Positions 4,479 to 42,700 of a stretch of 64,000 nt of DNA are shown here, in pieces. A model generated the notes under the pieces. The model was not told the DNA's origin. It ran no database searches and worked only from the letters and a program-made list of their open reading frames with translations. Origin of the DNA: Epiperipatus broadwayi (lineage: Eukaryota; Animalia; Onychophora). Numbering within the stretch: position 1 is the first letter of the stretch; each line of letters opens with the position of its first letter. Made by a program: the position numbers and the translations under genes. The stretch is taken from NCBI GenBank assembly GCA_028023455.1, contig JAQFVV010000005.1, positions 6,386,001 through 6,450,000 on the forward strand, read 5' to 3'.

Positions 4479-5539
4479 AAATTTATAATTGCTTCTTTCT
4501 CTATTGTCTATGTAGACTCATAATGAGCAAATTGGCCAGTCAAGCAATATCTTGAATATGTGTAGATTCATCAGACTTGGAATCAAAATTTGGTCTATTA
4601 AATAATGATGTTTTGTGTTTTTTGGATCTAACAATCTTATCACTTCTAGATTTATTTTAATGAATTCCCTTTCATCATATGGATATTTAGAGCATGCAAT
4701 ATCCCAACCAACCAGAAAATTGGCTTCATTACTAAAAGATGATAAGAGTGTTTGATGTTGATAAGACCAGATTTTAAAGATTGAAATTTCTCCACATGTA
4801 ATCTTGAATTGTTTGAATATGGACAGCAATGACAATGTAAGTTGCTAACTCTATAATTCACATTTGTAGTTTTGCAAAATGGTTTTCCATTATTTTCAAT
4901 GAATCTAAATTTTCCTTCCCAATTGTTTTAACATATTTATTTTCCTCCTTGTATTCTTGTTTTTTTGTTTGTTGAAACCATGATGATTACAAATGTAAAT
5001 AAAATTTTCTAAGTTTTTACATCAAAAATAAAATAAAATAAATTATATTTATTACTTGTATAAGAGTTCAATGGTATTAATTCTGTATTTTTCTGAATAT
5101 AAATTAATTACTTGTATTGCTTGATTAGAATATCTGAGGTTGATAATTGAAAGTTAAAGTAGAAAAACAACCTCAATAATGTTTGAATTAAAACTGTAAA
5201 AAAGAATAACAACACTCCATCATGTTCAAATAAAATCTGAACCAATAAGTTCAAACAATACGCTATATTTCCAGGAAATAAATTGTCACTATCCGACTTT
5301 CAAAATAAAAAGGAAATACATCAAGCTAACATAAATTATATCATGATTTTATTTCAAAGTTTCATAAGTCATACTGAAGTATCTAGAGAACTGCACATAG
5401 CTTGCTAGCAACAGTTTGGGCAGGATGATATATACGCATAATTATTTAGATGCTGCTTAAAGTAATAACATATTAAGAACAATTTTGAGTTGTGCATTGT
5501 CTGCAAATAATTCTATACTATTTCTATAAATTATTTATA

Positions 5540-5885
5540 ATATTTAAACAGCATTAAACTGTTGCACATGCACTTTGGATTTTAAATATAAAAAGAATGA
5601 ATACTAACACTTCAACCACATGATAAAGTCTTTGGAAAAGATTGCACATGTGCTTTGGATTTTAAATATAAAATGAATGAATACTAATACTTCAACCACA
5701 TGATAAAGTCTTTGGAAAAGATTGGCCATTCTATCTTTTCCAAAGACTTTATCATGTGGTTGAAGTGTTAGTATTCATTCATTTTTATATTTAAAATCCA
5801 AAGCGCATGTGCAACAGTTTAATGTTATTTAAATATTATAGTTTATAAAAAACATTGCGCTATATAAAATAATTGACTTATTTAC
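5540..5885 (+). mobile_element. Fold-back (hairpin) non-coding retroposon, family H1 copy 1
   Basis: Palindrome centred on GGCC (5724-5727). The left arm has an 80-bp tandem duplication (5562-5641/5642-5721). A ~45-bp one-sided tail (5841-5885) and a 14-bp TSD ATAAATTATTTATA (5526-5539, 5886-5899). Homologous to 41599-41865. Confidence 0.8.
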
Positions 5886-7362
5886 ATAAATTATTTATAT
5901 AAAAGTAACCATTTATCTTGCTGATTATCAATTGCTTTCTAACAAATCCTACCATTGAATTTCAACATTGTACAGAATCATAAATTAATAAAAATATCAG
6001 ATTAATGAAAAGTATCTTTATTCCACTTGTTCTGTTTAAATAATCAAGAGACTTATTAAATTCCTATCTATTATTGTCTTGTTGGCATTAGCCTTTTATC
6101 AATGAGAAGTTGGAACCTGGTTGTTAGATATTGTGATCAAATATATTTTTAATCCAGCAGCCACTTCTTATAATTTTTTGTAATATCAATCAAGTTACCA
6201 TCCTGAAATTCAAAAAATTAATACTTTGAAACCAAGTTAATTTGTTTGAATAATAATTCACTATCTATTTTGGTTATCACAATTTTTTAATAATTGTAGT
6301 TAGTCTATCCCTTAATCAGATTAATATTTAAAATATCACCTTAGCTCTTGCAATGCATATAAGCTGAGGTCACATAATTTTTATTTCATTTGAATAAAGG
6401 GCATCATGTGACGAGATATTAAAGTCCGGCACACAAAATTGTAATTATTGTATATATTATATTGTAAATACGTATATCCATTGCACATGTATTTTTCTCT
6501 ATCTGACTCGAGTTGAATAATCTAGCTTTAATATCTAGTATCTACAAATGAAAGATGTTGCACATTGATAAATCTAAAACAAGAGAATCAATCATAAATT
6601 TTTTTTTCCAGTTATATTACACCGTTATCATTTCATTAATGGCCACAACGTCTTTATTTAAATTAATAATTCAGTATTATATAATCAATTAGTTTTAAAT
6701 TGACTTTTCAGAAACAGGATTAATGGTTTAAAATACTTTTAAAGCAAAAGTCTACTATCTAAATTGATATAACACTTATACAGATTTTTCAAGCGCTACT
6801 GAAACTATTAATTATTAAAGTACCACATGGAAGTGAACAAAATATAATAGCTCATTTAATAATATTACAAAATGTTTATATATTAATGCGTTTTTAATTT
6901 AATTAATTAAAGCCTCATTTCAGTAAAAACGTTAACTATTATTGTCTCAACATTACGACATATATTATATTAATTTACAAATTACACAATTAAATAAAAA
7001 CATAAGGCATATTTATATAATGCAGAATAATAGAAACTTACCGATATATATATTTAATAAAATAAGTCTAATGTTATTTAGTATTAAAATGGTCAATAAA
7101 TGTTTTTAAAGTGTATTATTCTGGTAGAGGTCGCTATCTAAACTAATTTAAACATTTAACAATTTCGAAGTAATATTTTTGCCGTTACGGTACCTAAAAT
7201 TTTCAGGTAAGGTTTTTCTACTAAGTTAAAGAACTATGTTTTTTTTTAAAAAAAAATGTATCTTCATAAATAAGATTAATGTATGTGTTTTATTGTGTTA
7301 CATAAAGACAAAGTATTCTGGATTAAATTTTAGAAATCAGTTTGTATTTAGACTTTTTTATT

Positions 7363-7504: not shown

Positions 7505-7905
7505 AAGAATAAACGATGAAGACATAATATTCCTGAATTCTTTGTTTTAGAGCTCTAATATTTATCCTGGTTGACTGCAAATCTTAAAAGAATATAAGAT
7601 AATGTAGTTGATAATTAAAATATATTTAATTAATATTTACATGAAATAACAATATATGATTTATCAACAGTTAAAAATGAATTGCAACGCATTTTTATAA
7701 ACCATGTATGTCAAAATTCTCTTAAATTGAATAGTTTAAATTTTAACATTCTTTATGAAATAAATAAATTAAATTTCATTTGTATATATGTTGAAGTAAA
7801 AGTTTTCATGAGCGAAATAAATATTAAAAATTAATAATAACTTTTGGAAACAATAGTACAGAATATTGAAATAAATACTTTAATATTTTACCTCATAGTC
7901 TAGAA

Positions 7906-10434
7906 CAGCCATGCTCAACCTTTTTCTCCCGAGCCATATACATTTGTTTGCTACATCAAATGGGTCGCAACATATATCAACGGTGGGCAACCGGTTGGTG
8001 TCATGTGAAAACATTCCTTTATTTCTAAATTCGTGTGTCATTAAGTTATAGACCATGTACTATATCTTGTTATTAAAATTTCTTTCCACTTCTCTTTATT
8101 TGCATTGATAAATTATATATATATAGTATACCATACACTCCTCAATAAACACTTTACAATGCAATTTTAACGTATGATTTATTTCTTCTTGCTTACAATT
8201 AAGAAATGGTGTACTTGTAATGAAGTTTAAAGAGATCTGATAATGGTCGCAGGGCAGTTGAAACTGTAAGCAAGAGGAAATAAATCGTGTTAGAATTGCA
8301 TTGTAAAATGTTTATTGAGGAGTGTATGGTATAATATATATCTTGTTATTAACCAGTTAATAAAACAAAAATCCTTACTTGATCCAAAAATTTATTTAAA
8401 TATTAATGTGATTTTTACTATTGAGACAATTTTTTAACAATTTTAGATAAATCAGAATTTATACTCTTAAAATATCAAGATGTGAATCATCCTGATAGTG
8501 TTCTTGCATATTTCATTTTCGAATAAGGTGATTCATAAAGATACATCGATGCCATTTGAACATACTTTTTGACAGTTTTATGTTTTTCAGGCACTCTAAT
8601 TTCCAAAATTCCATAATTCCTTTTTCATTACAAATGACCTCCAAATCCAAGCCATTTTTAAATTCAACAAATTTGTCAAATAGTCTAACATAATCATGTC
8701 CAAATGCAAGTAATTGTGTAATAGTTATTTCTAAGTGCCAGGGATTTTCTATAAATAAGAGAATTCTTAATATTTTTTAAATCTTGAAATTTACTTTTAA
8801 ATTTTTTCAATAAGGCAGCTAGCTAAATGATTTGAAATGATGGCATAGGTTTCTGAAGAAATGTCAATATCATCTTGCTTAGCTTTTGTTAAGGTTGGGA
8901 AATGATTTAGTATTTGGGTTTGTATATCTTAGTAATAAATGTTTAGTTTTTCTTCAAACACAAATAGTTTATTTGCCATTTGTGATATAATTTTGCTTTT
9001 GCCTTGTAAACTGATATTAAAATCACAAAGCTTTTCTGTGATGTCACATAAAAAAAGCTAAAAGATAGCACTATTTATCACTGTCAAGCTTATTATAAAC
9101 TATATAGTTTTCTTGTAAGAATGAAATAACTTCATGCTGTAATGAAAAAAAGCAATCTAAAACTTTATTTCTGTTTAATCATCATACCGAAGTAGGCAAA
9201 AATATGTTGTATAATTACTATTTTTTCCCCCAAAAGATTTTTAAATTTTCTGTTGTTCAATTCTCAGACCCAAATTATAATTCACAATGTTTATGACACA
9301 TTTCATCATAGCATCTCCTTTTTTTATGGATATATGTGCTCCCAAGTTTTCTTGATGAATTAAACAGTGAAATGATGAGATTTGTTAAATTGTATTTCTT
9401 TTTTAACAGAGAAACAAATCCTTTTTCAGATCCAATCATTGAAGCACATCTGTCACTGTGCATGTAAATCGATTTTTTTTATTTTAGCATTATTCTACTG
9501 CTCATTTGATCTTTCGTAGGAAGAAATTTTCATGAATTGAATTCTGTTCAGTACAATATCTGATGAAAATGGCACATTATGATGGTGCTAGAATATGTAA
9601 AAAAAATTTATATGATGCTCATGTTACCACTGCTTCTTGTGAGATTGCCACCGATATGCAACTTTGTTATTGTAATAATGATTTCTTGAAGAAAGCTAAT
9701 TTTTCACTTCATACTAAAGACCCAAGAAAAAAAGTGACATTAAATAATTCATGTTTTGTGGTTTAATGATAATTAATGTTATATTTTTTTTATAGTGATA
9801 CTTTCTCGACAAATCAAATCCATTGCTGAACCTTTTTATTTAATACAACAAAATATTCCTCTTTCTAGTTATCTTGAAACACTCTTATTTTCATCAGATA
9901 TTTTCAGTTTGTTGTTTGAAGATGTCATTATGGATGTTTAAATTATAGTTTGTTATAAAATAGTACATTACAAAAGAACTACAAGTTTTTCAAATCACTT
10001 ATGATAAACATCATATCTCAATTTGCTTTCAAATAATGGACTAGTCCAGATTTTATCTTATAAACATATTTTATGTTTATATTAATTCATGTACAAAACA
10101 AAACAGGTTGGTGTAGTTGATAAGACATTGACAACTAACATTATTAGTGCATCAGTAAAAAACAACTCAATCATTATTGGTTACTAATTAATAATAAAGT
10201 CAGGTTCTTTTCTCGTGATTGCTTAGATTTGTGAAATTGAAGAACTAACAGTTAACATTATAAGTCGTCAATAAAAAAAAGTCAATCATGAGTGCTTACT
10301 CATTAGTTAAGAAGAGTTGAAAAATTTTTTTTTCTCCCATTTCAGAAAGAAAGGTAAGTGATATCCACTTCTCATTCATCATTCAATTATTGGACCACAT
10401 GTAAGGTTGGCAGACTGCAGGTTGATTATGGCTG
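7906..10434 (-). mobile_element. Decayed full-length hAT (Charlie/Buster-like) DNA transposon
   Basis: TIRs CAGCCATGCTCAACCT / AGGTTGATTATGGCTG (14/16). TSD GTCTAGAA (7898-7905) / GTCTAGTA (10435-10442) fits the NTCTAGAN Charlie target. Minus-strand remnants: KEEYFVVL...KYNINYH..TKH (~9740-9860), DRCASMIGSEKGFVSLLKK (9275-9463), SMYLYESPYSKMKY (~8500-8555). Confidence 0.85.
8077..8336. mobile_element. Fold-back hairpin insertion nested in the hAT element
   Basis: Inverted arms at 8127-8200 and 8262-8333, a 50-bp one-sided tail (8077-8126), and a 16-bp TSD TATATCTTGTTATTAA (8061-8076, 8337-8352). Confidence 0.8.
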
Positions 10435-11639
10435 GTCTAGTAGATCAGAACTGGCATAGATAGACCTCAAAGAAATATGAATTAATAACAGCAGTGAAAA
10501 TAACTATTATAATGCACTTTTTGTAATGTTGAGGATCAATTTTACCCGCTGTTGATAACTCATGTATTATTATTTTATGTAAATATTCTTTAAATATATT
10601 TTAATTATCTACTACATAACATTCTTTTATGTTATTAATTAATGTTAGCAAAACTACAGGTACAGCTAGTGAAATAATTATAGGACAAGTATAATGATCT
10701 ACAACATTATTTATAAAAATGTGTTACTGTAGTCCTATGCAATTTCTACACATTGGCGGAAGATAAATTATTAAATGTATAAAATCTGAAGCAGGTATAC
10801 TATTTAACTCCAGCTGTTTCTTAACTATTATTATTATTTCATATAAATATTATTTAAATATATTTGAATTACTGACTACAATATTTTTGTTTGTTTGGAA
10901 ATAAATAAAATTTCATTTGTACCATACGTGCATGTTAAAATTTTTGAGCTATTTTAAAACTTAATCATGTGAGCAATCTTTGAGTTATAGCAAAAAATAT
11001 AACTTTTTATTGTGAAATTTTAACATATTGTATTTTTTTCACACTGCAAGTGAGAAATTAATACATGGTCACAAACCACATTACCAGTGCTGCTCTCTTC
11101 TTTCATTTTTATGATATCATTGCAAATTATTAACATTTTTAAAACAAGTGCTATAAAATAAAAATTCTTAGCCTATAATATTCTCCACAAAAAAAGAAAG
11201 AAAATCATGCAAGATTCATCAGATTTGGTGCAATATTTGTTGAAATTATGAAATAGCAAATAAATAAACAATTAGAATCAGCAGTTTCCTTTAAGTATAC
11301 TATTGTATACATATTAACACTAATATAAATAAAATGTCCATTAATTAAAACAAAATTGTAATTATAATAAAAGTAATAAATTTAACTGTAATAAACTATT
11401 ATAAACAATCCTTAAATTCGGCAGAAGTACTTTTGGTTAATTTCTTAAACCTGCCTCAACTGCCATTAAATTAAAAAAACAAAGCAGAAGCAAACGTCAT
11501 CAATTCAAATCCCACAAATCTCGTATTTTAATGTTAGCAGCTTGTCTATTTATTAAATGCACTTTATTCCTATTTATAAAAATTGCCTCCTTAATTTTTC
11601 TTTTATTATGGTGTCTCTTTTCATGAAGAATTTTCACAT

Positions 11640-12730
11640 TTTCAAAATCAAATTTAAACTTATATTTACATGTTTTTTCATGATCAAAGAAATCACCATT
11701 ATTTTTACTTTTTTTACACTCATATAATAATTCATGTTCCCTCAGTCTCTTCTCAATACTGCACCTAGATTCACCTATCTATGATAGCATATAATCACAA
11801 AAAATTTGATATATGGCATTACTTTTCTGCTTGACAGGTATGACATCCTTAGAATTATTGACTAATTTATTAATATTGTTTGGAACGTAGAATGAAACAT
11901 TAAACACATTCCTATATATATATCTTTAAAAAATTTCACTTGTGGATTTGAAATAAATGGAATAGATATCCCTTGTTTACTATTAATCTTCATTTTCTTT
12001 AAACCATTATAACTTTTTTTAAATTGACATAAAGTATTGCTTATTTGTTCCATTTTATAACCAACATCAAGCAAATCCTTGGCAAATATCTCTATTTTTC
12101 AATTTATCACTTTGGTAACAATATAATTTTTTCATTACTAAACAAACAAGATCTAAAACTTGCCATCTTATGCATAATTGGTACTTTTGATCTACAATTT
12201 ATATATCCCCTTTTTTGCAGTGGCTTAATTATTAATTTATAATTTAATATATTGTTATCTCTTGAAATAATTAAATCTAAATATTTAATATTTTTGTTCT
12301 GTTCCTTTTCAATAGTCCATTTCAAGCCATTCAACTTATTTAATTTCTCTACTAGCAAATTTATAGTATTAGTATTTCCACAAACAAAAACATCATCCAC
12401 ATATCTTTTGTAAATTTTAATATCTACAAAAGTACACATATTTAAAATACTATTCTCATATGTAGATTAAACAAAATTGCAAACTTGTGCAACTATAGGC
12501 AGACTCATAGGCCAACCTTTAGACATTTTATAATATTGACCTTCAAAAGATGCAACAATGTTATCATTAAAATTTTTTAAAGAATCAATAATAAACTTTA
12601 TCATATATTTACAAATACTTTTACTTTTTAGTGTATTTTCAATTATTTTTATGGAATTCATTCTGTCAATAGATCTATACATTTCTGTTACATCCAATGA
12701 AGCAATAACATCATTCTCATCAATCACCAA
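11640..12730 (-). pseudogene. PLE reverse transcriptase/GIY-YIG remnant, left arm (ORF pieces 12467-12730, 12107-12439, 11862-12074)
   Basis: IASLDVTEMYRSI, SKGWPMSLPIVAQVCNF and YKRYVDDVF mirror the right arm and carry independent lesions. Confidence 0.9.
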
Positions 12731-12905
12731 ATTTTTAATACTATTTACAAAATCAAATGATGAAGCAATAGTGTAATATTAAAAATTTGATGATTGATAA
12801 GAATGATATTATTGCTTCATTGGATGTAACAGAAATGTATGGATCTATTGACAGAATGAATTCCATAAAAATAATTGAACATACACGAAAAGTATTTGTA
12901 AATAT

Positions 12906-13841
12906 ATGATAAAGTTTATTGTTGATTCTTTAAAAAATTTTAATGATAATCTTGTTGCATCTTTTGAAGGTCAATATTATAAAATGTCTAAAGTTTGGCC
13001 TATGGGTCTGCCTGTAGTTGCACAAGTTTGCAATTTTGTTTTATTTACTTATGAGAGTAGTGTTTTAAATATGTGTACTTTTGGAGATATTAAAATTTAC
13101 AATAGATATGTGGATGATGTTTTTGTTTGTGGAAATACTAATACTATAAATTTGCTAGTAGAGAAATTAAATAAGTTGAATGCCTTGAAATGGGCTATTG
13201 AAAAGGAACAGAACAAAAATATTAATTATTTAGATTTAATTATTACAAGAGATAACAGTATATTAAATTATAAATTAATAATTAAGCCACTGCAAAAAAA
13301 GGGATATATAAATTGTAAATCAAAAGTACCAATTATGCATAAGATGGCAAGTTTTAAATCTTTTTTCTTTTGTAATGAAAAATTATGTCGTTACCAAAGT
13401 GATAAACTGAAAAATATTGAGATATTTGCCAAGGAATTGCTTGATGTTGGTTATAAAATGCAACAAATAAGCAATACTTTATGTCAATTTAAAAAAAGTT
13501 ATAATGGTTTAAAGGAAATGAAGATTAATAGTAAACAATGGATATCTATTCCATTTATTTCAAATCCATAAGTGAAATTTTTTAAGGATATATATAAGAA
13601 TGTGTTTAATGTTTCATTGTACGTTCCAAACAATATTAATAAATTAGTCAATAATTCTAAGGATGTCATACCTGTCAAGCAGAAAAGTAATGTCATATAT
13701 CAAATTTTTTGTGATTGTATGCTATCATATATAGGTGAATCTAGGTGCAGTATTGAGAAGAGATTGAGGGAGCATGAATTGTTATATAAGTGTGTAAAAA
13801 GTAAAAATAATGGTGATTTAATGTCCTTCAGTTTTCTTTGA
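12906..13841 (+). pseudogene. PLE reverse transcriptase/GIY-YIG remnant, right arm (ORF pieces 12906-13571 and 13572-13841)
   Basis: YKMSKVWPMGLPVVAQVCNF, YNRYVDDVF, and KSNVIYQIFCDCMLSYIGESRCSIEKRLREHE. An in-frame TAA sits at 13569-13571. Confidence 0.9.
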
Positions 13842-15130
13842 TCATGAAAAAACATGTAAATATAAGTTATTTACGAAAATTCTTTATGAAGAGAGAAACC
13901 ATAATAAAAGAAAAATTAAGAAGGCAATTTTTATAAATAGGAATAAAATGCATTTAATAAATAGACAAGCTGCTAACATTAAAATACAAGATTTGTGAGA
14001 TTTGAATTAATGATGTTTGCTTCCATTTTTTTTTTTTTTTAATTTAATGGCAGTTGAGACTGGTTTAAGAAATTAACCGGAAGTACTTCTGCGGATTTAA
14101 GGATTGTTTATAATAGTTTGTTACCATTAACTTTATTATTTTTATTATAATTATATTAACACTATTGTATTAAAGCAGTTCAATAATAAATAGACTCATT
14201 CAACAAATAAAAATCTCTTAAGATTGTAAAGCAGTCGATCAGTTAAATAATAACATACAGTCAATGACATAAACATGCCACTAAAGTAACCTGATTAGAG
14301 AATGTGTTGTTGTGTGGTTTACAATATGGTAGAGGCAACAGTGGAATTCAGATAATACACAATCTTGCTGCTCTAATAAGCTTGAAGTATAACGACAATA
14401 TATCCAACTGTAGTTTAATTCATTAAATAAAATGCAACTTAATTTTTTTCCTCTTTTCATCAGAGTAACTAAAACCAAACTTATATATGTATATAATAAT
14501 GGAGCATGCTCTATTTTTTTTTTTTAATTCTTTGTAAAAATCTCACTAAACAAATAAAATGCAGTAAATGTTGATTGTGTGCAATATACAGCTTCATTTT
14601 GTGAGAATCATTTCATCATATCTGCCACCAGTAGATAGCAATTTTACATTTGTGTAAATGATAAGAATGACCGTGTTTGGAATACGATTAAATCTTAGGA
14701 TAGGGATGTGCTTTTATATTTGAAGTTTTTTTATTCTGTCCACATGTAGATTAATCATAAACATATATATACTCTTTATACTTCTTCTATACGAAATGTA
14801 ATAAATGTCATAAGTGTGCTTAAATGCATATATAGAGAAGCTTGTTATTTCTATAAATTAAATACGGCTTAGCACTTTTGAGAATTTATGGTGTTCTCAT
14901 ATTCATAGCAAGATGAAATAGAATTATTCTATATCATCTTGTTGGGCGGGATTTGTATTAAACCACTAAACATAACATGATCACCATTCTTTATGCTTAC
15001 ACAATCTGTTTATACAGAAGCAAAACTTTCTATACAATAGCACCATTTAGTTCAAACCAGAGTAATCAATGGATGCAGGAAGGTTTGTTTGTGCATAAAA
15101 TCACTATCTAGTGCCTATTCATCCAACATT

Positions 15131-15168
15131 CCCAGACTAGTTTCTATCCTGTGGCTTTCATCAGTGAG
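15131..15168 (-). ncRNA. Second copy of the hammerhead-like motif, opposite polarity
   Basis: Reverse complement reads CTCA-CTGATGA-aagccacaggata-GAAACTAGTC-TGGG. Confidence 0.5.
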
Positions 15169-15766
15169 GAGCCTTGGATCTGAGTGCACTGCATCTAGAT
15201 CTCAGGATCTAATGCAACCCTCCAGCAGTCATCTTTTACCTTATTAGCTAATTATAAAACTTTGAGTCGAAAATAAAACACAATAACGTTTTTAATTCAA
15301 GCTCATTAACTTATATAGTTCTATAGCTCTGAATTTAGTTCAGCATCCATATTTTTTGTTGTCTTTGGTTCTTTAATAACCACAGACATCATAGTCTGGG
15401 GATGTTGGATGAGTAGGCACTAGATAGGGATTTTATGCACAAACAAACCTTTCAGCATCCATTGATTACTTTGGCTTGCACTGAGTGGCGCTACTGTATG
15501 AAGAGTTTTGCCTCTGTGTAAGCATAAAGAATAGTAATCATGTGATGTTTAGTGATTTAATACCAATCCTGCCCAATAGTATTATGATGATACTGAACTG
15601 ATTTCAGATCTATGCAACTATAGAAGCTAATGAGCTTGAATTGAAAACATTATTGTGTTTTTATTTTGAACTCAAAGCTTTATAGTTAGCTAATAAGGTA
15701 AAAGGTGGCTGCTGGAAGGTTACATTAGATCCTAAGATCTAGATGCAGTGCTCTCAGATCTAAGGC

Positions 15767-15808
15767 TTCTCACTGATGAAAGCCACAGGATAGAAACTAG
15801 TCTGGGGA
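15767..15808 (+). ncRNA. Putative minimal type I hammerhead ribozyme (non-canonical stem II)
   Basis: TTCTCA-CTGATGA-aagccacaggata-GAAA-CTAG-TC-TGGGGA. Stem I has 6 pairs including G-U, stem III is the palindrome ACTAGT, and GUC gives a predicted cut after 15802. The G10.1-C11.1 pair is absent. Confidence 0.55.
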
Positions 15809-16759
15809 TGTTGGATGAGTAGGCATTAGATAGGGATTCTATGCACAAACCTTCCTGCACCCATTAATTACTCTTGTTTGCACTGAATGGTGCTACTGTA
15901 TGGAAAGTTTTGCCTCTTTCATCTTACTATGAATATGAGAATGCTGTGAGTTCTCAAAGTGCTAAGCAGTAATTAATTTATAGAAATAACAACTTTTTCT
16001 ATAATTGTGTACAAGCGCACTTATTTCATAAAAATATAAACAAAATATTGTTTTATGCATAAATTTTTATTATTTTATTGATAATAAATGTGTGATAATG
16101 AAAAATATATTTCATGAAACGTAATGACTTTTATGAAATGAATAATAAATAATATAAGTATTATTTTAACAACAAGTTTTGCGAAGTTAAAAAAAAAAAA
16201 CAAATTGTTCTGCCAAATCAATGTGAACTGAATAAATCCTACCAATAGTTAAATTTGAAAACTATTTGGTCTTAGAGAAATTATTTACTGTTCACAATTT
16301 TAGAATGGCTCTATTTGAATGAGGTTGCCTATCAGTTCAGAGAAATAAGCTGCTATTGATTAATAAAATCTATATTACACCAGCAATGGATGCAGGAAAT
16401 ATGTAGATCTTAGAAGGATTGGGAACTAATTTCACACTAATTTATGGAAACACAAAACTAAAAAGAAATCTCTTATTCTTTCATCTAGCCTTTCATTCAT
16501 CACAAGGCAGTGAAAGTAATGATTGTAACCTTTGTCTCTCATTGTGGTTGAAAAATTCATACTGCTGTCTTGCGTAAATGTAAATAGTTTCATATTAGTA
16601 AGCTTTAAATGTCAAGAGTCTGAAATAGGATACCAAACATAGGATATGACTGCCATTTTCATTCTCGCGATTCATGGGTAATCATTATGCAAAATTCTTA
16701 ATATCATTACTGAATCTTTTTTTTTTTGTCTTATAGAATTCCAGATATTCACTTCTTCT

Positions 16760-17165
16760 CTTTTTTGTGCCTTAATATTTGTGTAATGGCTAACGATATA
16801 GTTTTTGACTGTAGAGGGACCTCTCAAACCTCAACACAAGATAGGAACTTTACAAAGATAAGAGTGACTGTCTTATCTTTAACCTAAATTCTTACTTATA
16901 TAGGCCAGTCTGAAGCATCCTGATATGAGAGCCTGAAGATGCTTCAGATTGACCTATTTAAATAAGAATTAAGGTTAAAAATAAGATGGCTGCTCTTATC
17001 TTTATAAAGTTCTTATCTTGAGATGTTGTTTGAGAGGTCCCTCTACAGTCAAAAACTGCATTGCTTGGCTATTATACAAATGCTTAAGACACATGTGAAA
17101 AAGGTTAAAATCTTTCTCTTTCTAATTACAGATGTGCTGTACACTTGATAAATAATCAGAAGGTT
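16760..17165. mobile_element. Fold-back hairpin insertion
   Basis: Arms at 16762-16919 and 16938-17094 with an 18-nt loop, a ~71-bp one-sided tail, and a 15-bp TSD ATATTCAC(T/A)TCTTCT (16745-16759, 17166-17180). Confidence 0.75.
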
Positions 17166-17217
17166 ATATTCACATCTTCTAAATGGAATGTTTTAAATAT
17201 TTCCATATTCCTTCACC

Positions 17218-17586: not shown

Positions 17587-18206
17587 CCTTCACATCTTTA
17601 TATATATGGTCTTGCCTCAGGTGAAAATTGTTGCCCCTAAAAATTCTACCAACATTATCTATATGTGTAACAGCAGCTAAAGGCAATTTTTGTAAATTGA
17701 AAATTTAAAAAAATTATTAGACAATGTCTCAAGATGAATTAAATGCTCTATAGATTTTAATGAAAAGTTTATAACTAAAACAATAAACTATAAAAAAGCT
17801 ATCAAACTATTTGTTATTACTAAAACCTAAAAAATGATTTAATATATTATGATTTTTTTTTTATTCTATAAGTTTTTTAAAAATATATTTTAACTTACTT
17901 TGCTTCATTTTTCTGCATTTTTTTTAATTTGATATTTTTTTTATTTTTGTGTGCATGTTTTTGTTTTGTTTTTTAAATAAAGATATTTGTATTTATTTAA
18001 TATATATATTTCCTATTAATTCATCACTTTCTTCAGAGACTATTTTAAATAAGTAGAAAAGTTTTGTAATAACTGCCCCACTGCAGAGCAAAGATATCTT
18101 CAACAATTCTCCATAGTTAAGCAGTGAAAGAGAAAACTTGCCAATTTCCAAGTTATGAGCGTTTGAGTGGTTTTTTATTGTTGTTTTACTCTCTAGTTCA
18201 GGATTA

Positions 18207-18390
18207 CACAGAGGCAAAACTCTTCATACAGTAGCACCACTCAGTGCAAGCCAGAGTAATCAATGGATGCAGGAAGGTTTGTGCTTAAAATCCGTATCTA
18301 GTGCCTACTCATCCAATATCCCCAGACTAGTTTCTAGCTTGTAGCTTTCATCAGTGCTTAAGCATAAAAAAATGGTGATCATGTGATATT
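18207..18390. mobile_element. Third copy of the hammerhead-bearing unit, with a 5' inversion
   Basis: 18207-18356 is the reverse complement of the unit (motif CTGATGA-aAGCtacaaGCTa-GAAACTAGTC at 18322-18356). 18360-18393 continues the unit in sense. TSD TAG(T/C)TCAGGATTA (18194-18206, 18391-18403). Confidence 0.75.
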
Positions 18391-20430: not shown

Positions 20431-20914
20431 TTGAAGGATTTCTTTGATAGATTGAATGCTTTTGATTCTAATATTAATTTTACATTTGAGAGGGGTACTT
20501 TTGATTTAAATTAAAATTTCTAGATTTAAGTGTTGATATTGTTAGTAATATTTTATTTTGTAATCATTTTATTAAACATAAAATTTTAAGAAATATGATA
20601 AGACCTGATACTTATCAACCTTTTATTAATAACTTTGAAAATGATTATATTCAAAGGAGTTGATTTCCTTCTGATTACAGTATATTGATTTTAGTTATAA
20701 TCATGAATTTATTACAAATATGATATTTAATAAAAATATCAATAAGCCTGATACTAATAAAAATGTATTTGTTAGTGAGAATAAAAAGTTTCTTTATCAT
20801 TTAAGTCAGCAGTTTATAGGTTGGTTTATAAGAGTAGTCATTTTTGGATAACTTGGAAGAAAGGTCTGGATTTAAATTCATTATTGAGTAATTCAGAACA
20901 ACTGATTGATAACA

Positions 20915-21245
20915 TATTAATAGTTTTTAATAGTCATTCTTTATATTGGAGATCATTCTATAATGAATAATATTTGTGTAGTGTAATTTTCACTGCACGA
21001 CTCATACAAGGTAGGGACTGGTTTCTATCTACTTTTAACACATTGTGGAATGATGTAATCATAAACATGATATGCTGGATCAACATGAAATGTGCATTGT
21101 GGATCATAGATCTTTGTCACATATCTTTCTTTGTCACATATTTATGATTACATTCTTCCACAATGTGCTATAAGTGGATAGAAACCAGTCCGTATCTTGT
21201 GTGAGAGTGATGTAGTGAAAATTACACTACAGAAATATTATTCAT
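20915..21245. mobile_element. Fold-back hairpin insertion
   Basis: Arms at 20963-21065 and 21141-21245, a 48-bp one-sided tail, and TSD AACTGATTGAT (20900-20910, 21246-21256; extends to 15 bp with 2 mismatches). Confidence 0.75.
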
Positions 21246-26183: not shown

Positions 26184-26280
26184 ATATTACAATTGACACA
26201 CTTACATTAAATATTGATGGTAGCCATTTAGAGGATCTAAAGCTTGGATTTTTATGGTAAGTTTACAGTAAGTTGTAAAG

Positions 26281-27807: not shown

Positions 27808-28226
27808 CAATAATGCCCAGGAAGTTAAAAATCAAATGGCCTTACCATTGGATCTAGGTAAAAAATGTTTGGAATTTCATATGAAATTATTTTTATGTCA
27901 TAATTTTTTGATGATTTGACAGGAATCTTAGTTCAACATCTAAAAAGGATCTTGATTTGAAATGAGGTGAGACAGTTTCTGATATTTAGTGGAAGAATAT
28001 GTGAAAGAACAAGAAAACACTACAAAAGAGCAGACTTGAATATGCCAATAATAATTATCATGATAATATTCGAGTAGTCAGATGTATAGTGTGGGCATTT
28101 TTTTCTACTAGAGGTGCAATTTATGAGTAAAATATGCTAGTTCCAAATAGATCCAGACCAACAGTATTATTAAATTGAATAGAGTAGCATATTTCAATCT
28201 ATTGTAACAAACGATATTCAGATTAT

Positions 28227-28730
28227 ACATTAAAGATCAGCCTGTCAAGCTATTGTGCATACGCTTTTTACGATTGTTAATAATAAATGAATACTTTGAC
28301 TTCCAACACAAGATATAGTATTTAGGAAAGAATAAAATGAATCCACTTATTCTATCCAATCCAAATGCTTATATATGGGCAAATCTTAAGTACTGGAAGT
28401 GAAAGCGTGTGGATAGACCACTCACTTTAAATTACTGTTTACGATGTCTGAATGAATGACGTCGACGAAATTATTTAGAATTTACTAAACATCATTCTCA
28501 AATGAAACTTAAACATATGTAAATAAGTATTTATTTTATATAGTGCATATTTATAAACTGTAATACATTAAAGATCAGCCTGTCAAGCTATTGTGCGTAC
28601 TATATCTTGTGTTGGAAGTCAAAGTATTCATTTATTATTAACACTCGTAAAAAGCATATGCACAATAGCTTGACAGGCTGATCTTTAATGTATTACAATT
28701 TATAAACATGCGCTATATAAAATAAATGCT
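28227..28730. mobile_element. Composite fold-back insertion sharing its terminal module with family H1
   Basis: 28227-28320 is inverted relative to 28597-28691. 28521-28596 is a second inverted copy that includes the terminal module. 12-bp TSD TATTCAGATTAT (28215-28226, 28731-28742). Confidence 0.75.
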
Positions 28731-30651
28731 TATTCAGATTATGAGAGTTTTCCCTGATGTTTAGATGAAAAATTAAACACACTGTGTTGGTGAGATTAAA
28801 AAATAAGATCTCATACTGTAAAGAGATTTTCAGACCATTCTTATTAATAGACCTCTATTTTTTGACAGGATCTCTTTTGTAATAGCAATACCACCAATAT
28901 AGATGAATTTTTTGCATTCTGTTTTTGAAAAATTTCTAATGAATTTATTAAATAACGTATGTGAGAGAACTGAACTGTTAAATTTTGTAGCTATGAAAAT
29001 TATTATACTATTACCACAGCAAAACTTGATGAATTGGTTAAAACAGAAAATTATTTATATATTATATAGTTTTCCATATATTGATTAAAGTATTTATTGG
29101 TTTTTATTTAAATTACATATTTTGTAAATCTTTTTTATAACAACAATCACTAAATAATATGAACAATCTTTTATTATAAATCCTTTTTATTATATTGTAT
29201 TAAGCTTAGTTGTATGTTTTAGCATTCACTTATTGGTATATAATATCAAGAAAACTCATGGATATTTATTGTTCTGTCTTTGGTATTGAAATATAAATTT
29301 TTAATCTTTTTTGTTTGTGAATCATATATGTTGCCATTTTATAAGTTGTATATCATTCATATTATTTTATATTTTAATACTTTAAAAAAATTTTTTTTTT
29401 ATATATTTATAACTTAGCAATACTTTTATATATTGTTTTTTTTTTTTTGTTTAGATTGGCTGTAATTCACAGAAAAAAAAAATCTTTGGTTTTCAAACAT
29501 CTTAATTTACCAATTATTGCAGAAAATATGTATGGACTACAATTTAATTGCTCTTAATTTTGAACACATTCTTGAAATTGTATATCTACTGATCAGAACT
29601 CACTGAACATTGGATATTTTCTTTATCAGATAATTCTTACAAGTTATTTAGTTTCTATTATATGCAGAAAATAATTGGCATATCCATAAACGACCAATTT
29701 ACTTAATGAAATCACAATGATTCCTCTTAGAATTTTTTTTTTTTACGATGACTATTATTTTGAGAAAAAATATTGATAGAGAATTCATTGAAATAACATT
29801 AAAAATATAACCCCAAATTAAGTGATATTAGGAGGGAAAATGCCATTTTATATTAAAAAAATTTTTTTTAATGGAATTTAAATTAATAGAATTAAAATTT
29901 GCAGAAGTATCAAATAGGATAAGAATTGGAAGTATAAAATGTTGAAAGTGGATTCAATTGGAATTGATAAGACTTAAAAATAATAAATGTTAATGATAAG
30001 TGAAGTTATATGAATATACAGATTATAGAAGTGATAGATTAAATTGTTTTTTGTTCATTTCCTACATTTTTGAGATACCATCATTCACAAAATGAATTTG
30101 TCTTTATAGAGATTTTTCCCCTCTAAAGTTAATAAATGATCTGTAAGTTTTTTAAATTTAAAATTATCATTTTAACTAAGACAAACATCTACAATTTTTT
30201 TTTATACTTTGATTTGGTGATATTATTTATTACTAAGCAAAGTATTTTGTTAAATTCAAATAATTAATATTAAATACTGCTTTAAAATGTCTCTGTAGAA
30301 AAAGTTTTTCCAATTGTTATTTCTAATGATATTATAATATATATTATTAAAATAATCAAAAAGATAAAAGTAATAATTAAGATTTATTACTTAATGACCA
30401 TCATATAATTTTAAAAACTTGCTTCTGCTTGATGTGAATTTAATTTAAAAAGTAATTGAAAAAGATTTTAAATGGCAGAAAATTTTTTTTAGTATTGCAT
30501 TTTATAAAAGAAAGTGCAACAAAAAATGTGCATTAAGTGTTTAAAATGGATAAAATTAAAATTGTATGCTTTTAAAGCTGCTAAGACTTGTATTGAATAA
30601 AAAATTCACATAGCACTATTTGGGCTTGTAAAAAGTATAATTTAAAACTAT

Positions 30652-32784
30652 ATGAACAAAGGCATACAGGAGAGAAATCTTTCTAGTTTAGTTTTAAGTA
30701 CAGGATTACTACAACAACACTTTAAAATGTATGAAAGAACACATTCAGGAAAAAAAAAATTTCAATGCAATCTGTGTGACTACAAGACTGCTGGGAAAAA
30801 AGATTTAAAAGTACATGAAGAAACACATACTAGGAAAAAACCTTATCATTGCAACTTCTGTAATTATGAAACTTCGACTAAATATATTTTAAAAAATCAT
30901 GAAAGTATACATACAGGAGATCGGCCTTTCCAGTGTAGATTGTGCAATTATAAGACTGCTGTTAAACACAGACTAAAAATTCATGAAAGAATGCATACAG
31001 GAGAAAAACCATACCAATGCAATTTATGTAACTTTAAGACAGCTACTAAGGATAGATTAAAAATTCACGAAACTATTCATACTGGAGAAAAACCATTCCA
31101 GTGTGCATTGTGTAATTATAAAACTGCTGTTAAAACTAGATTAAAATTACATGAAAGTTTTCATATGGAAGAGAAACCTTTCTGCTGCAGCTTATGTGAT
31201 TATAAGACTTCTGTAAAAAATAATATGAAAATGCATGAAAGAAAACATTCAGGAGAAAAACCCTTTTACTGTAATATGTGTGGTTACAAAGCTGCTCATA
31301 AAAACTGTTTAAAAATTCATGAGAGTATACATACGGGACAACAACCATTCCAATGCACTTTGTGTGATTATAAGACTGCTGCAAAATATAATTTAAAAAT
31401 TCATGCAACAACGCATACAGGAGAAAAACCTTTTCAGTGTAGTTTATGTAATTATAAAACTAATATTAAAAAGAAATTAAAAATTCATGAAAGTTCACAT
31501 CTCGGAGAGAAATTCAGCTTATATGATTACAAGACTGCTGCAAAAAATAATATGAAAATGCATGAAGGAAAGCATTCAGAAAACAAATCTTTTCAATGCA
31601 CTATGTGTGATTATACAGCTGCATATAAAAGCTGGTTAGAAATTCATGAAAGGTCACATACTGGAGAAAAGCCTTATCAGTGCAATGTATGTAACTACAA
31701 AAGTAATATAAAATCTAATTTAAAAGTTCATGAAAGAAAACATACAGGAGTAAAATCATTCCATTGTAGCTTATGTAGTTATAAGACTTCTGCTAAGTTT
31801 CAATTAAAAGTGCATGAAAGTGCACACACAGGAGAAAAATCTTTTCATTGCAGTTTGTGCAATTTTAAGACTGCTATTAAATATTCATTAAAAATTCATG
31901 AAAGTTTCCATACCGGAGTCAAACCTTTTTGCTGCACTCTATGTGATTACAAAACAGCTAGAAAAGGTAATTTGAAAAAACATGGAAGAATACATTCAGG
32001 AGAAAAACCTTTTGAGTGTTCTGTATGTGATTTCAAGACTGCTGATAAGACATCTTTAAAAAGACACAGAAGAACAACACATAGCAATGAAAAACCTTTC
32101 AAGTGTTTTATGTGTGATTATAAGACTGCCTTAAAAAGTAATTTAAAAGCTCATGAAAATACACATTCAGGAGAAAAACTTTTTGAGTGCAGATTATGTG
32201 ATTATAAAACTTCAGTAAAATATAAATTAAAATTTCATGAAGCAGCACATACAGGGGAAAATCCCTTACATTGCAACTTGTGTAATTATAAGACCTATAT
32301 AAAAAATAGATTAAAAATACATATGAGAATACATGTTAAAGAGAAACCTTTCCACTGCACATTGTGTAAATATCAGACAGCTCTCAAAAGCAGTTTAAAA
32401 ATACATGAAAGAATTCATTTGCAAGTAAAACCTTTTCCTTGTAAAATGTGTAATTATAGTAGTACTCAAAAAAGTAATTTAAAAATACATGAAAAATTAC
32501 ACATTAGGGAAAACCTTTTCCAATACAATTTATGCGATTACAAATCTTGTTTTCAGAATGATTTGATAAGTAATACAAAAAATAATCATTTAAAACATGC
32601 TTGTATAAACTTTGATCAAAATAAACAGGAAATAAAATACGTACCAAGTGATAGTTGTAGTCCTGGAGTATTTCAATGTCATTTATGTGATTACAAAGAT
32701 GAAAATAACAATAGTTTGAAAATTCATGAAGCTAGACATTTCACTGATTATGATATGCTTGAAATTCTCATAAAAATTGCATGA
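30652..32784 (+). CDS. Tandem C2H2 (Kruppel-type) zinc-finger protein, 21 intact fingers plus degenerate fingers; upstream exons possible
   Basis: 710-aa uninterrupted ORF of F/Y-x-C-x2-C-x-Y/F-K-T-x6-L-K-x-H-x3-H units joined by TGEKP-type linkers. Confidence 0.93.
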   Translation: MNKGIQERNLSSLVLSTGLLQQHFKMYERTHSGKKKFQCNLCDYKTAGKKDLKVHEETHTRKKPYHCNFCNYETSTKYILKNHESIHTGDRPFQCRLCNYKTAVKHRLKIHERMHTGEKPYQCNLCNFKTATKDRLKIHETIHTGEKPFQCALCNYKTAVKTRLKLHESFHMEEKPFCCSLCDYKTSVKNNMKMHERKHSGEKPFYCNMCGYKAAHKNCLKIHESIHTGQQPFQCTLCDYKTAAKYNLKIHATTHTGEKPFQCSLCNYKTNIKKKLKIHESSHLGEKFSLYDYKTAAKNNMKMHEGKHSENKSFQCTMCDYTAAYKSWLEIHERSHTGEKPYQCNVCNYKSNIKSNLKVHERKHTGVKSFHCSLCSYKTSAKFQLKVHESAHTGEKSFHCSLCNFKTAIKYSLKIHESFHTGVKPFCCTLCDYKTARKGNLKKHGRIHSGEKPFECSVCDFKTADKTSLKRHRRTTHSNEKPFKCFMCDYKTALKSNLKAHENTHSGEKLFECRLCDYKTSVKYKLKFHEAAHTGENPLHCNLCNYKTYIKNRLKIHMRIHVKEKPFHCTLCKYQTALKSSLKIHERIHLQVKPFPCKMCNYSSTQKSNLKIHEKLHIRENLFQYNLCDYKSCFQNDLISNTKNNHLKHACINFDQNKQEIKYVPSDSCSPGVFQCHLCDYKDENNNSLKIHEARHFTDYDMLEILIKIA

Positions 32785-36432: not shown

Positions 36433-36440
36433 AAATTTAT

Positions 36441-37063
36441 GGTACTTGTGATTTTTGACCCATGTGGCCACCAGAGGCGCTGGTCAGGGTCAACCACAGA
36501 AATACTTAGAGTAGGGGCCCCAAATGCAGCAATGCAAATGTCAGCCGATATGTGGCACTGTTCACAATGTGTAAGCACAGGAAAATTCCACCAGCTGGCT
36601 GGCAGCAAAGCTGCCCGCTTGGTGGTGCTGGTCACAATGCATAAGCCCATTTAGCTTACATAGTCTGCTACCAGCGACTACCAAGTTCCTAGGTGGTGCT
36701 GATTGCCATAAACACATCTAGCTTATGTGTCGTCTGCTACCAGAAACTACCAAGATTCTAGCCCACTATGTGGCGCTGTTTCTCCATGTTACACACGGAA
36801 AAACAACGCACTAATAGAGTTTATGTACGTACTACTTAAAAGATGGCTGGCTTATAATGTACAGGTGTGATTAATTAAGAAGTTACAACTATTTAAATAT
36901 GCGTTCAAACTTAATAGTGTCACATGCTATTTCACAGTTTTATAAATGGATGTATATTTAAATTATTTCTTTTTAAAAATCAATCTTTTTTTTTTAATTA
37001 TTTACTCTAAAAGTGTTTTTTTTTTTTTTAAATTAAAAAAAAATGTAATTTTTACGACAATTG

Positions 37064-37095
<32 letters not shown>

Positions 37096-40000: not shown

Positions 40001-41340
40001 GACCCTCATGCATTCAGTGTTGCTCTTAATAATTTAAATGCTGTTGACTGCAATGTTTTTTCTTAATCTTTTAAACAAAACAATCCAAATTTCAAAAATA
40101 ATTCCTCAATCTGTGTTTGTTTTATAGACCATGACATTATATTAAATGTATATATTTTTTAACCTGCAACTTAAATCTGTGTGATGCCACTCTCACATAT
40201 CTTGGATTACTGTCCTATCTTCATTAATTTGCATCTTGGGTTGCTTCCTTCAAAACAGAATCTTTTTGCTATATTGTCATTTCTGAGTCTGTATAATATT
40301 AATTTTAATAAATTTATTATTTACCAAAGATAGTAAAACTTGAATGGTTTATAAATTTATTTAGATCGTATATTACAAATAATAGATGTATGTGTATACA
40401 TAAATTGTACTGTAAACTTCCTTTAAATTTGAACTGAATAGATATTTTAATATATTTAAAGGAGAGTTTGATTTGCTTTTTCTCCAGTAGTTTGATCTTC
40501 GAATTATTGTTTGCCGTGTAACAGCTTTTTAAAATAACACGTTTGCGAAATATTAATTGAAAGATGTATAAACCAAAATATAATTTGTATTACTTTAAAA
40601 GTTATTGGATAATATTGTTTGAAAGTGTAAAAAAAAAAAGTTTTACAAACAATCATCTTTTTAAACAATACAGTTTTGAAAGAAGGGAAAAAAAATTAGC
40701 TTTTTTTACCCCCCTCCCCCCGATTGTCGTAAAAATTACATTTTTTTTAATTTAAAAAAAAAAAACACTTTTAGAGTAAATAATTAAAAAAAAAAAGATT
40801 GATTTTTAAAAAGAAATAATTTAAATATACATCCATTTATAAAACTGTGAAATAGCATGTGACACTATTAAGTTTGAACGTATATTTAAATAGTTGTAAC
40901 TTCTTAATTAATCACACCTGTACATTATACGCCAGCCATCTTTTAAGTAGTATGTATATAAACTCTATCAGTGTGTTGTTTTTCCGTGTGTAATGTGGAG
41001 AAACAGCGCCACGTAGTGGGCTAGAATCTTGGTAGTTTCTGGTAGCAGACGACACATAAGCTAGATGTGTTTATGGCAATCAGTGCCACCTAGGTTCTTG
41101 GTAGTCGCTGGTAGCAGACTATGTAAGCTAAAGGGGCTTATGCATTGTGACCAGCGCCACCAAGCGGGAAGCTCTGCTGCCAGCCAGCTGGTGGAATGTT
41201 CCTGTGCTTACGCATTGTGAACAGCACCACCTATCGGCTGGAATTTGATTGCTGCATTTGGGACCCCTACTCTAAGTATTTCTGTGGTTGACCCTGACCA
41301 GCACCTCTGTTGGTCACATGGGTCAAAAATCACAAGTACC
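36441..41340. mobile_element. 4.9-kb non-autonomous DNA transposon with ~680-bp TIRs (Merlin- or MULE-like)
   Basis: TIRs at 36441-37123 and 40672-41340 start GGTAC and contain internal subrepeats (GTCTGCTACCAG..ACTACCAAG twice). Exact 8-bp TSD AAATTTAT (36433-36440, 41341-41348). No transposase ORF inside. Confidence 0.88.
38678..38850 (+). repeat. 100-bp-period imperfect tandem duplication
   Basis: CCTATAGCTGGACTCG...GTGAGTTCTTT...GGCTTATGGCATCTTCT starts at 38679 and 38779. Confidence 0.85.
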
Positions 41341-41348
41341 AAATTTAT

Positions 41349-42700
41349 TTATCACCACTATTGATTTAATTATTGACTATTGAAAATGATTAGAAAATTT
41401 TTATCTGTTTATAACTATTAAGATTCGAAATCAAATCAAATGTGTAACTGTGGAATCAGGATCTGAAAATATTAATAATTATTATACTACAAACTATCAC
41501 AAATTTGTTATATTAAATCACAGAAAAGGATAATCAATCACGGAAAGTTATCATACCTACCTGCATAAGAGAAAATTGATTTATTATGTTCTAGGAAATA
41601 AATCAATTATTTTATATAGCGCGAAGTTTTATAAACTGTAATAGCTAAACAGCATTAAGCTGTTGCACATGCGCTTTGCAGATTTTAACTATAAATGACT
41701 GAATACAAACACTTCAAACACATGATAAAGTCTTTGGGAAAAGATAGAATGGCCTTCTATCTTTTCCCAAAGACTTTATCATGTGTTTGAAGTGTTTGTA
41801 TTCAGTCATTTATAGTTAAAATCTGCAAAGCGCATGTGCAACAGCTTAATGCTGTTTAGCTATTATATGTTCTAGGAAAGTGGAGTGTATTCTATGCAAA
41901 TTATTTTAAATCATCTTAAATACTGTGAGATTTATTTGACATTTGAATATTCAACTTATTCTTATGCAGGAAAACAACCTATATTACTGAATTAACGTAA
42001 TGAAATTTTGGGCATTGATTTTTATGGGCCTCTCCTACCTTTCTATAGATTCAAATTCATTCTTATTGTATATATTTTTTTCAAAATATATATCTAGTTA
42101 TCCCATTATAAAAGTTAATACAAGAAGTGTAATTAAATCTATGCAAGACTTCCATGAGTTGGAAATCTAATCTATTTTAACTGATCATGATACTTCATTT
42201 ATATCCAGTGAATTGAAAGAAATGAATAGAAAATTAAGAAATTAAACATATATTGAGAGTCATGCCTGAGTTAGAGAGATTGTTTAGGGTATATTTAAAG
42301 GGAGATCATCTGAATAGGGTAAAAAAAATTAAAAGTGGTGATCAATTATATTAATATGATTCAAAAAGAATCAATTATGTTTTTACCCATCCATTTGCAT
42401 TTTGGATGTAATGAGCCTTTGTTGGTTAAAATACATGCCAATAATCCTAGAGGAAGTAAATAATGATTTAGATATAAGTAAACCTCAAAATAAGTCAAAA
42501 AGAATTTTTCAAGTTACTCCAAATGTTTTTAATGATTTTGTTTTAGTAGAATTTTTCCAAGTTAATGACTCAGAAAAGCACAAGTTCAAAGGGACCATTC
42601 CAAATAAAGAAGATTGGAGAAAAGTTATTATTAGAAACTTGAGATGGTATATAAGGTACCTATAATGCAGGAAGTTTAAAACCTTTGTCATTTCCTAAAT
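41349..42700 (+). mobile_element. Decayed Gypsy LTR retrotransposon, 3' part (integrase)
   Basis: EILGIDFYGPLLP (42002-42040) and TDHDTSFISSELKEM (from 42180) match the D and DxG-xxF integrase motifs. It continues the pol remnant left of the long-TIR insertion. Confidence 0.75.
41599..41865 (-). mobile_element. Fold-back hairpin retroposon, family H1 copy 2 (perfect 111-bp arms)
   Basis: Arms 41639-41749 and 41755-41865 are exact reverse complements around TGGCC. A 40-bp tail (41599-41638) and a 14-bp TSD TATGTTCTAGGAAA (41585-41598, 41866-41879). Confidence 0.9.

Follow-up and report, generated by a model that had tools for sequence, protein, structure and literature searches.

Eight insertions with one-sided tails

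What kind of machinery leaves behind a nearly palindromic body, a tail of a few tens of base pairs on one side only, and a target-site duplication (TSD) of variable length? The question is raised by a 64,000-nt stretch of the genome of Epiperipatus broadwayi (contig JAQFVV010000005.1, positions 6,386,001 to 6,450,000; GC ~26%), referred to below as the window and taken from a 5.6-Gb animal assembly. An earlier note, made from the letters of the window alone, listed eight such places and ascribed them to retroposition of non-coding RNAs by a reverse transcriptase (RT), probably that of a Penelope-like element (PLE), with the cDNA folding back onto itself. We find that the eight insertions are genuine and clearly exceed what chance would give, and that they comprise one coding PLE and seven short non-coding elements that ride on PLE machinery (riders). 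They represent the known PLE footprint on new, very abundant non-autonomous families. How each insertion came to have two arms and one tail is best explained, in our reading of the sequences, by two initiations at two adjacent internal template sites followed by head-to-head joining of both cDNAs, through target-primed reverse transcription (TPRT) by a PLE; we assign this a probability of about 0.6.

A repeat search of the window recovered an inverted-repeat body at all eight of the listed places, here called el1 to el8 in their order along the window. The tails are always single-sided and measure 45, 42, 36, 52, 72, 48, 37 and 40 bp from el1 to el8; six of the eight lie within 36-48 bp, and el4 (52 bp) and el5 (72 bp) exceed that range. 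The earlier values were 45, 50, 34, 58, 71, 48, 39 and 40 bp; those for el1, el6 and el8 stand, and the others are revised here. Read directly from the element ends, the TSDs vary in length between 10 and 16 bp and agree with the lengths first given (14, 16, 12, 10 (weak), 15 (1 mismatch), 11-15, 12 and 14 bp). The 3' ends of the elements are unique sequence, with no poly(A) or simple repeat.

The target duplications were evaluated with an unbiased inverted-repeat scan of the window and of unselected flanks of genomic loci, using swapped flanks as the control. Of 28 inverted repeats, 8 are flanked in the one-sided-tail geometry by exact TSDs of 11 bp or more, compared with 0 of 724 swapped-flank pairings, which confirms the combination of fold-back body, one-sided tail and 10-16 bp TSD at the eight places. 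The 10-bp repeat of el4, taken alone, is near the chance level of the scan (about 1%). In the family of el8, an exact TSD of at least 7 bp flanks 19 of 30 genomic copies, most of the others gain one when a few bases of end jitter are permitted, and ~3% of 868 mismatched-flank pairs reach 6-10 bp. The unselected flanks also contain new inverted repeats, L005:1982-2484 and L036:570-1219, with one-sided tails of 52 and 63 bp and exact TSDs of 12 and 11 bp. Their presence in flanks that were not chosen for them suggests that the architecture is common throughout the genome.

The eight fall into several groups. El1, el7 and el8 form one superfamily, which we call H1; el2, el5 and el6 represent three further families; el4 is a hammerhead-type retrozyme-like unit; and el3 is the coding element. 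The arguments about mechanism come mainly from H1 and from the family of el3.

The H1 superfamily

El8 (41599-41865) is a near-perfect 2 x 114-bp head-to-head dimer of the H1 family, with a 40-bp tail on the left side (41599-41638) and a 14-bp TSD, TATGTTCTAGGAAA, at 41585-41598 and 41866-41879. El1 (5540-5885) is likewise a non-coding head-to-head dimer, with an additional partial arm copy at its centre; its 45-bp tail is on the right side (5841-5885) and its 14-bp TSD, ATAAATTATTTATA, occupies 5526-5539 and 5886-5899. El7 (28227-28730) is a single H1-related insertion in which the minus-strand side spans 28227-28597 and the plus-strand side is a short arm plus a 37-bp tail (28694-28730), all within a 12-bp TSD, TATTCAGATTAT, at 28215-28226 and 28731-28742. 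The three have the tail and the outer arm in common. The genome contains at least 1132 candidate places for el8 and at least 2185 for el1 (these are not copy numbers), and many genomic copies match the full 267-bp el8 dimer at 95-99% identity with an identical centre.

We compared 30 genomic H1 copies. Their outer ends are sharp, the tail is a constant 40 nt, and exactly one end is tailed in 28 of the 28 informative copies. TSD length ranges from 7 to 15 bp within this one family. The ends jitter by 0-7 nt, and the untailed end, with a jitter of 0-5 nt, is a discrete, sequence-defined site. Past the tail the jitter bases are TTTACAT, and at the opposite end they are C, CA or CAG; both sets correspond to the downstream template in the 343-bp tandem unit described below. 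Since the extra bases are templated, the RNA must extend beyond both ends, and initiation is internal.

The H1 consensus is a 114-bp palindrome with zero spacer. Within single copies, nine private variants, one of them a 1-nt deletion, are mirrored in both arms, and there are almost no one-arm variants common to several copies. Together these patterns indicate that the dimers are not replicated as units and that both arms derive from one template. The centre, at the self-complementary ATGGCCAT, is the sole indel-hypervariable spot, and its forms are independent of the other variants, so the junction is formed anew at each insertion.

Longer forms show what the arm belongs to. Single-arm monomers and 343-bp tandem arrays of H1 sequence are present in the genome. 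The minus-strand side of el7 is a head-to-tail multimer of ~1.2 units (period 338); its outer end coincides exactly with the untailed site, and a complete tail lies inside it. The short arm is the tailed one, and the whole is a single event. Another genomic locus, L025:1501-2802 (G000:C21), is a single insertion with a 14-bp TSD in which a short tailed H1 arm is head to head with a 3.4-unit array. This head-to-tail array of a 343-bp unit stops precisely at the untailed site, and each internal unit retains its full tail. The array thereby identifies an H1 arm with its tail as the 3' portion of a longer unit. The full unit is about 340 nt, and a near-palindrome in the L025 unit (ATAGATGGCCA CC TGGCCATTCT) is located exactly at the turning point of the dimers.

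The coding Penelope-like element

El3 (11323-14152) consists of two 5'-truncated copies of a canonical endonuclease-positive (EN+) PLE, head to head with their 3' ends outward. The left copy is on the minus strand and the right copy on the plus strand, and the left copy reaches 30 nt further into the open reading frame (ORF). The 36-bp tail (11323-11358) is on the left copy, and the 12-bp TSD, ATATTAACACTA, is at 11311-11322 and 14153-14164. A longer genomic copy has a 712-aa open frame with DKG, YVDD and a C-terminal VIYQIFCDC..SYIGES block. This frame aligns colinearly (E 9e-43) with the protein P0006 through RVT_1 and GIY-YIG, and P0006 scores above both Pfam thresholds. A Pfam scan of the PLE ORF itself, whole and in pieces, gave no match, and membership of the class therefore rests on homologs. 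Judged by this alignment and these motifs, el3 is a genuine canonical PLE with a predicted RT and, at its C terminus, a GIY-YIG domain.

The family is very abundant and young, and the genome is saturated with it. There are 221,846 first-look candidates, many with uninterrupted 795-797-aa frames at 92-95% identity, and head-to-head and tandem pairs recur. By inspection, without statistics, the flanks are mostly (TA)n or (CA)n microsatellites, a bias not seen for H1. An inverted partner abuts about 21 of 27 loci and ranges in length from 63 to over 1400 nt. Copies lose their 5' part at varying points, and hotspots of truncation lie 0-25 and 79-107 nt upstream of the centre of el3. Rfam hammerhead models found nothing in the 3' untranslated region (UTR) or tail of the coding family, the parts that were scanned.

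Coding pairs follow nearly the same rule as the riders. About 12 of 15 pairs are tailed at one end and no more; among those 12, the longer arm carries the tail in 7 and the shorter in 5. The arms of five pairs have 10 pair-private variants in common, compared with a mean of 0.15 per non-partner pair, and this again points to a single template for both arms. Partner arms are not consistently nearest neighbours (ranks 1-7 of 31), as is expected in a star-like family.

Two start sites or a folded cDNA?

The outer ends of the insertions are at two discrete, sequence-defined template sites 36-72 nt apart, with one end at each site. One initiation, or cleavage, at each of the two sites explains all of the observed forms. 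In the scheme we favour, the PLE protein would nick both target strands 7-16 bp apart, and this stagger would become the TSD. Both 3' ends would prime cDNA, at the pair of neighbouring internal start sites described in vitro by Frangieh et al. 2024 (PMC11167929). The two antisense cDNAs could then be joined head to head via a template switch or microhomology, for instance at the self-complementary TGGCCA at the end of the H1 arm, probably on one RNA or one multimeric RNA. The tail would be the stretch between the two start sites and not the remnant of an unfinished snap-back.

That remnant is how the earlier note explained the tail: one nick primes a cDNA whose 3' end folds back, copies itself and stops before reaching the cDNA 5' end. 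Several features fit with such a snap-back. Spacers are small or absent and the arms are nearly equal in many copies, including the coding pairs L045 (about 559 versus 590 nt) and L050 (about 204 versus 166 nt), which are truncated at unusual points. Self-copying would also give both arms the same private variants and would yield the near-strict one-tail rule, and palindromes at inverted junctions have been noted before (PMC3846280). The symmetry of the arms can, however, be mimicked by truncation hotspots, and other features are difficult to reconcile with a fold-back. Untailed ends are set by sequence and their jitter is templated, unlike stops scattered along a template. At the centre of the H1 consensus the palindrome is perfect and loop bases are missing, a form for which an intramolecular turn provides no template. 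In el7 and L025 it is the short arm that reaches the tailed site, and the long multimer finishes at the untailed one. Since self-copying can yield only an arm as long as the first or shorter, it would need to halt at site 2 when making an ordinary dimer yet at site 1, within a template that continues, when making these two. The five coding pairs tailed on the shorter arm pose the same difficulty. The claim that copying stops a few tens of nucleotides short of the priming junction is thus not supported in that form, and we regard snap-back as an improbable, if still serious, account of these insertions.

A second possibility is that the dimer itself is the replicating entity, a hairpin-shaped short interspersed element (SINE) or miniature inverted-repeat transposable element (MITE)-like master that is transcribed and copied end to end. 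The many copies that match the full el8 dimer, centre included, are what this predicts. A replicating dimer should also pass on variants confined to one arm, and almost none are shared among copies, whereas private variants appear in both arms at once. The centre is the only indel-hypervariable spot and is uncoupled from the other shared variants, and the same sequence exists as single-arm monomers and 343-bp tandem arrays. We consider replication of whole dimers very unlikely.

Twin priming by long interspersed element (LINE)-type machinery would replace the PLE altogether. L1-type TPRT likewise makes variable TSDs of 7-20 bp and 5' inversions. The insertions described here lack the poly(A) or simple-repeat 3' end, however, and their two arms cover the same 3' region, not adjacent segments. 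The tail and partial tandems are PLE-specific according to PMC8557442, and the single coding member is a PLE. There is accordingly little reason to credit a LINE origin. Least credible of all is mobility through a DDE transposase, as for DNA-transposon MITEs or fold-back elements. The riders do resemble these in being short, AT-rich, non-coding and high-copy and in having terminal inverted repeats, but their TSDs vary from 7 to 16 bp within and between families, their ends are asymmetric because the tail is one-sided, the same families form single arms and head-to-tail arrays, and a coding RT-GIY-YIG element has the identical footprint. On this point the earlier note was right to separate PLE-type retro-insertions from DDE MITEs, given TSDs of 7-15 bp within one family and an RT and GIY-YIG member among the eight.

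Several observations weigh against initiation at two sites, or against the role of the local PLE in it. The tail of el3 is on its 30-nt longer arm, and the junction has a 6-nt inverted microhomology, AATAGT/ACTATT; a snap-back would look alike. Among the coding pairs, the single-event origin of those tailed on the short arm is unproven, because their flanks are low-complexity microsatellites. The H1 sample consists of the top-scoring matches to a one-tailed query and is therefore biased to one-tailed dimers, leaving untailed ones uncounted. Mirrored variants could also come from arm-to-arm gene conversion after insertion. Frangieh et al. (PMC11167929) found that the start sites are used without strand preference, and independent choice would not give a near-strict one-tail rule, so coupling between the two ends must be assumed. 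Finally, the link between riders and the PLE is loose at the sequence level. El2, el4, el5 and el6 have tails that bear no relation to that of the PLE, which runs counter to the idea of one RT for all eight. A match between tails and PLE 3' ends, which the note had proposed as a check, did not emerge for H1 either: its similarity to the 3' end of the el3 PLE is not significant (74 of 1000 shuffles reach the score), and the two have in common only the boundary motifs ATTA|CA(A/G)TTT and TTTATTT(T)ACA. The pairing of each short family with a particular PLE is not established.

The coupling that two-site initiation requires could take a specific form, which we put forward tentatively and would sooner bet against than for. 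The PLE complex may work as a coordinated pair on one RNA, one member at the distal and one at the proximal start site, giving one tail to each insertion. If the trailing cDNA switches onto the leading one, zero-spacer palindromes would result, with arms sharing all template variants. SINE-like riders without a hammerhead might have taken advantage of such a mechanism thousands of times in this genome and so built up a large stock of perfect long hairpins.

Further rider families and searches for ribozymes

The remaining riders extend the pattern to unrelated sequences. El2 (8077-8336), el5 (16760-17165) and el6 (20915-21245) are head-to-head dimers of separate non-coding families. El2 has a 42-bp tail on the left side (8077-8118) and a 16-bp TSD, TATATCTTGTTATTAA, at 8061-8076 and 8337-8352. 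The el5 tail is on the right side, at about 17094-17165 (72 bp), with a TSD of 15 bp and one mismatch at 16745-16759 and 17166-17180. The 48-bp tail of el6 is on the left side (20915-20962), and its TSD at 20900-20914 and 21246-21260 is 11 bp if exact and 15 bp with 2 mismatches. In the genome we find at least 1460 candidate places for el2 (dimers and single-arm monomers), at least 4279 for el5 (monomers, dimers and tandem arrays) and at least 5342 for el6 (whole dimers and single arms), again as candidate places and not copy numbers. The dominant genomic form of the riders is the head-to-head dimer, not the tandem array. Partial head-to-tail tandems occur in L025 (343-bp period), in el7 (338), as the direct repeat of el4 (406-bp offset), in el5 arrays and among coding tandem pairs.

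El4 (14809-16081) is a composite, with inverted and direct (406-bp offset) arrangements of a retrozyme-like unit. Its 52-bp tail is at about 16030-16081, and the weak 10-bp TSD, TAATAAATGT, is at 14799-14808 and 16082-16091. A motif search found hammerhead-like cores of the form CUGAUGA...GAAAC-UA-GUC at 15773 on the plus strand and 15164 on the minus strand; this core gets no Rfam score. A further fragment of the el4 family occurs at 18197-18356, with 86-92% identity to three parts of el4 and a CUGAUGA...GAAA core at 18354 on the minus strand.

Elsewhere, Rfam and motif searches found no hammerhead core in el1, el2, el6, el7, el8 or the 343-nt H1 unit, and in el5 only a partial CUGAAGA without GAAA. 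Rfam hammerhead models gave no match at the gathering score, none at E<=5 in the 5-22 kb part of the window and none at E<=1 in three family loci. No cellular RNA family in Rfam matched inside any element. Sub-threshold matches to plant and animal 'miRNA precursor' families were rejected as generic long-hairpin matches. The short insertions are indeed non-coding, as first supposed, but they do not derive from cellular RNAs: they are dedicated high-copy repeats. The seven riders are high-copy, non-coding, non-autonomous Penelope riders and not cellular non-coding RNAs.

Relation to known systems

Much of this architecture has precedents. PLE insertions are known to be 5'-truncated and to form partial tandems, frequently with an inverted copy alongside and a tail of 30-40 bp at one of the ends, and non-autonomous relatives have been reported (Craig et al. 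2021, PMC8557442). Arkhipova et al. 2013 (PMC3846280) described a 31-bp tail on one inverted pseudo-long terminal repeat (pLTR) and TSDs of 8-10 bp, demonstrated pLTR trans-mobilisation with empty-site proof, and inferred self-priming from palindromes at inverted junctions. In vitro, a PLE protein cleaves and extends both strands, and reverse transcription begins at two neighbouring internal sites, the stretch between them being the tail (Frangieh et al. 2024, PMC11167929). Animal retrozymes have been argued to be non-autonomous PLE derivatives (Li, Clavereau & Pollet 2026 preprint, 10.64898/2026.07.22.740005). With the footprint, self-priming and trans-mobilisation all published, the noted architecture and most of the mechanism that the earlier note proposed were already known.

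How do the elements in this genome compare? With canonical EN+ PLEs (Penelope/Poseidon, Neptune, Nematis; Evgen'ev & Arkhipova; PMC3846280, PMC8557442) the coding element shares the ORF with RT and C-terminal GIY-YIG, 5' truncation, an adjacent inverted copy, partial tandems, an optional tail of 30-40 bp at one end, a variable short TSD and microsatellite targets. It differs in its extraordinary abundance here and in the absence of an Rfam hammerhead from the coding 3' UTR or tail, and the 52-72 bp tails of el4 and el5 exceed the published 30-40 bp. Like the animal non-LTR retrozymes of de la Pena and colleagues, the riders are non-coding units of a few hundred nucleotides, found as monomers and also in head-to-tail arrays, in a genome rich in PLEs. 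El4 resembles them most in having a minimal CUGAUGA...GAAAC-UA-GUC core with a self-complementary ACUAGU, of the dimeric PLE type. Unlike retrozymes, six of the eight elements (el1, el2, el5, el6, el7 and el8) and the H1 unit have no hammerhead core by Rfam or motif search, and the head-to-head dimer, not the tandem array, dominates.

In the Anolis Poseidon PLE studied in vitro (PMC11167929), as here, the tail is the interval between adjacent sites, the template extends 3' of both, and both strands can prime. Our evidence is genomic, in contrast, and comes from non-autonomous families; the insertion ends almost always use different sites, a coupling unreported in vitro. Non-autonomous Chlamys elements (e.g., MRC1) and pLTR-mediated trans-mobilisation in Adineta vaga provide parallels in which PLE enzymes act in trans to mobilise non-coding or foreign sequence, and the repeats and TSDs are of PLE type. 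Those cases involve another PLE clade and host, whereas here several short families reach thousands of copies, mainly as near-perfect palindromes.

Other features of the window

Other inverted repeats in the window differ from the eight. The largest has 461-nt arms at 36535-36995 and 40787-41247, 95% identical and 3.8 kb apart; complementarity extends outward beyond the two ends given here, the arms show no relationship to the eight elements, and comparison of the outer arms revealed no TSD in the tail geometry. Another, at 43295-44041, has arms of about 60 nt, a 627-nt spacer and a best TSD of 8 bp, which is unconvincing, and it is dissimilar to the eight elements. Inverted matches of 86 and 68 nt link 7585-7670 with 10549-10634 and 10829-10896, about 3 kb apart at 81-84% identity; these are probably dispersed copies of another repeat. 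Between insertions, at 30652-32784 on the plus strand, is an uninterrupted 710-aa ORF composed almost wholly of C2H2 zinc fingers (zf-H2C2_2, E 4e-117, 19 stretches), for which a similarity search gave generic C2H2 matches only. In the window, Rfam reaches gathering score only once (38.5 bits), for a tRNA gene at 63612-63683 on the minus strand.

Implications

Abundant young, short riders represent a natural experiment on how PLEs integrate. They show in vivo that there are two discrete internal end sites, one for each end of an insertion, and one template for both arms, a pattern that constrains models derived from a single in vitro study. There is also a practical consequence for annotation: such riders are easily misfiled as MITEs or as miRNA-like hairpins, and the sub-threshold Rfam 'miRNA' matches are of that kind.

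If transcribed, el8 RNA is predicted to fold with -193 kcal/mol (z = -33), and thousands of near-perfect hairpins of 100 bp and more could then be a major source of double-stranded RNA. The suggestion that the hairpins are a source of double-stranded or small RNA is, on such predicted folds, plausible. Long hairpins are also potential sites of palindrome instability. Should PLE complexes prove to act as coordinated pairs, the resulting hairpin reservoir could both feed small-RNA pathways and act as fragile palindromes in this genome.

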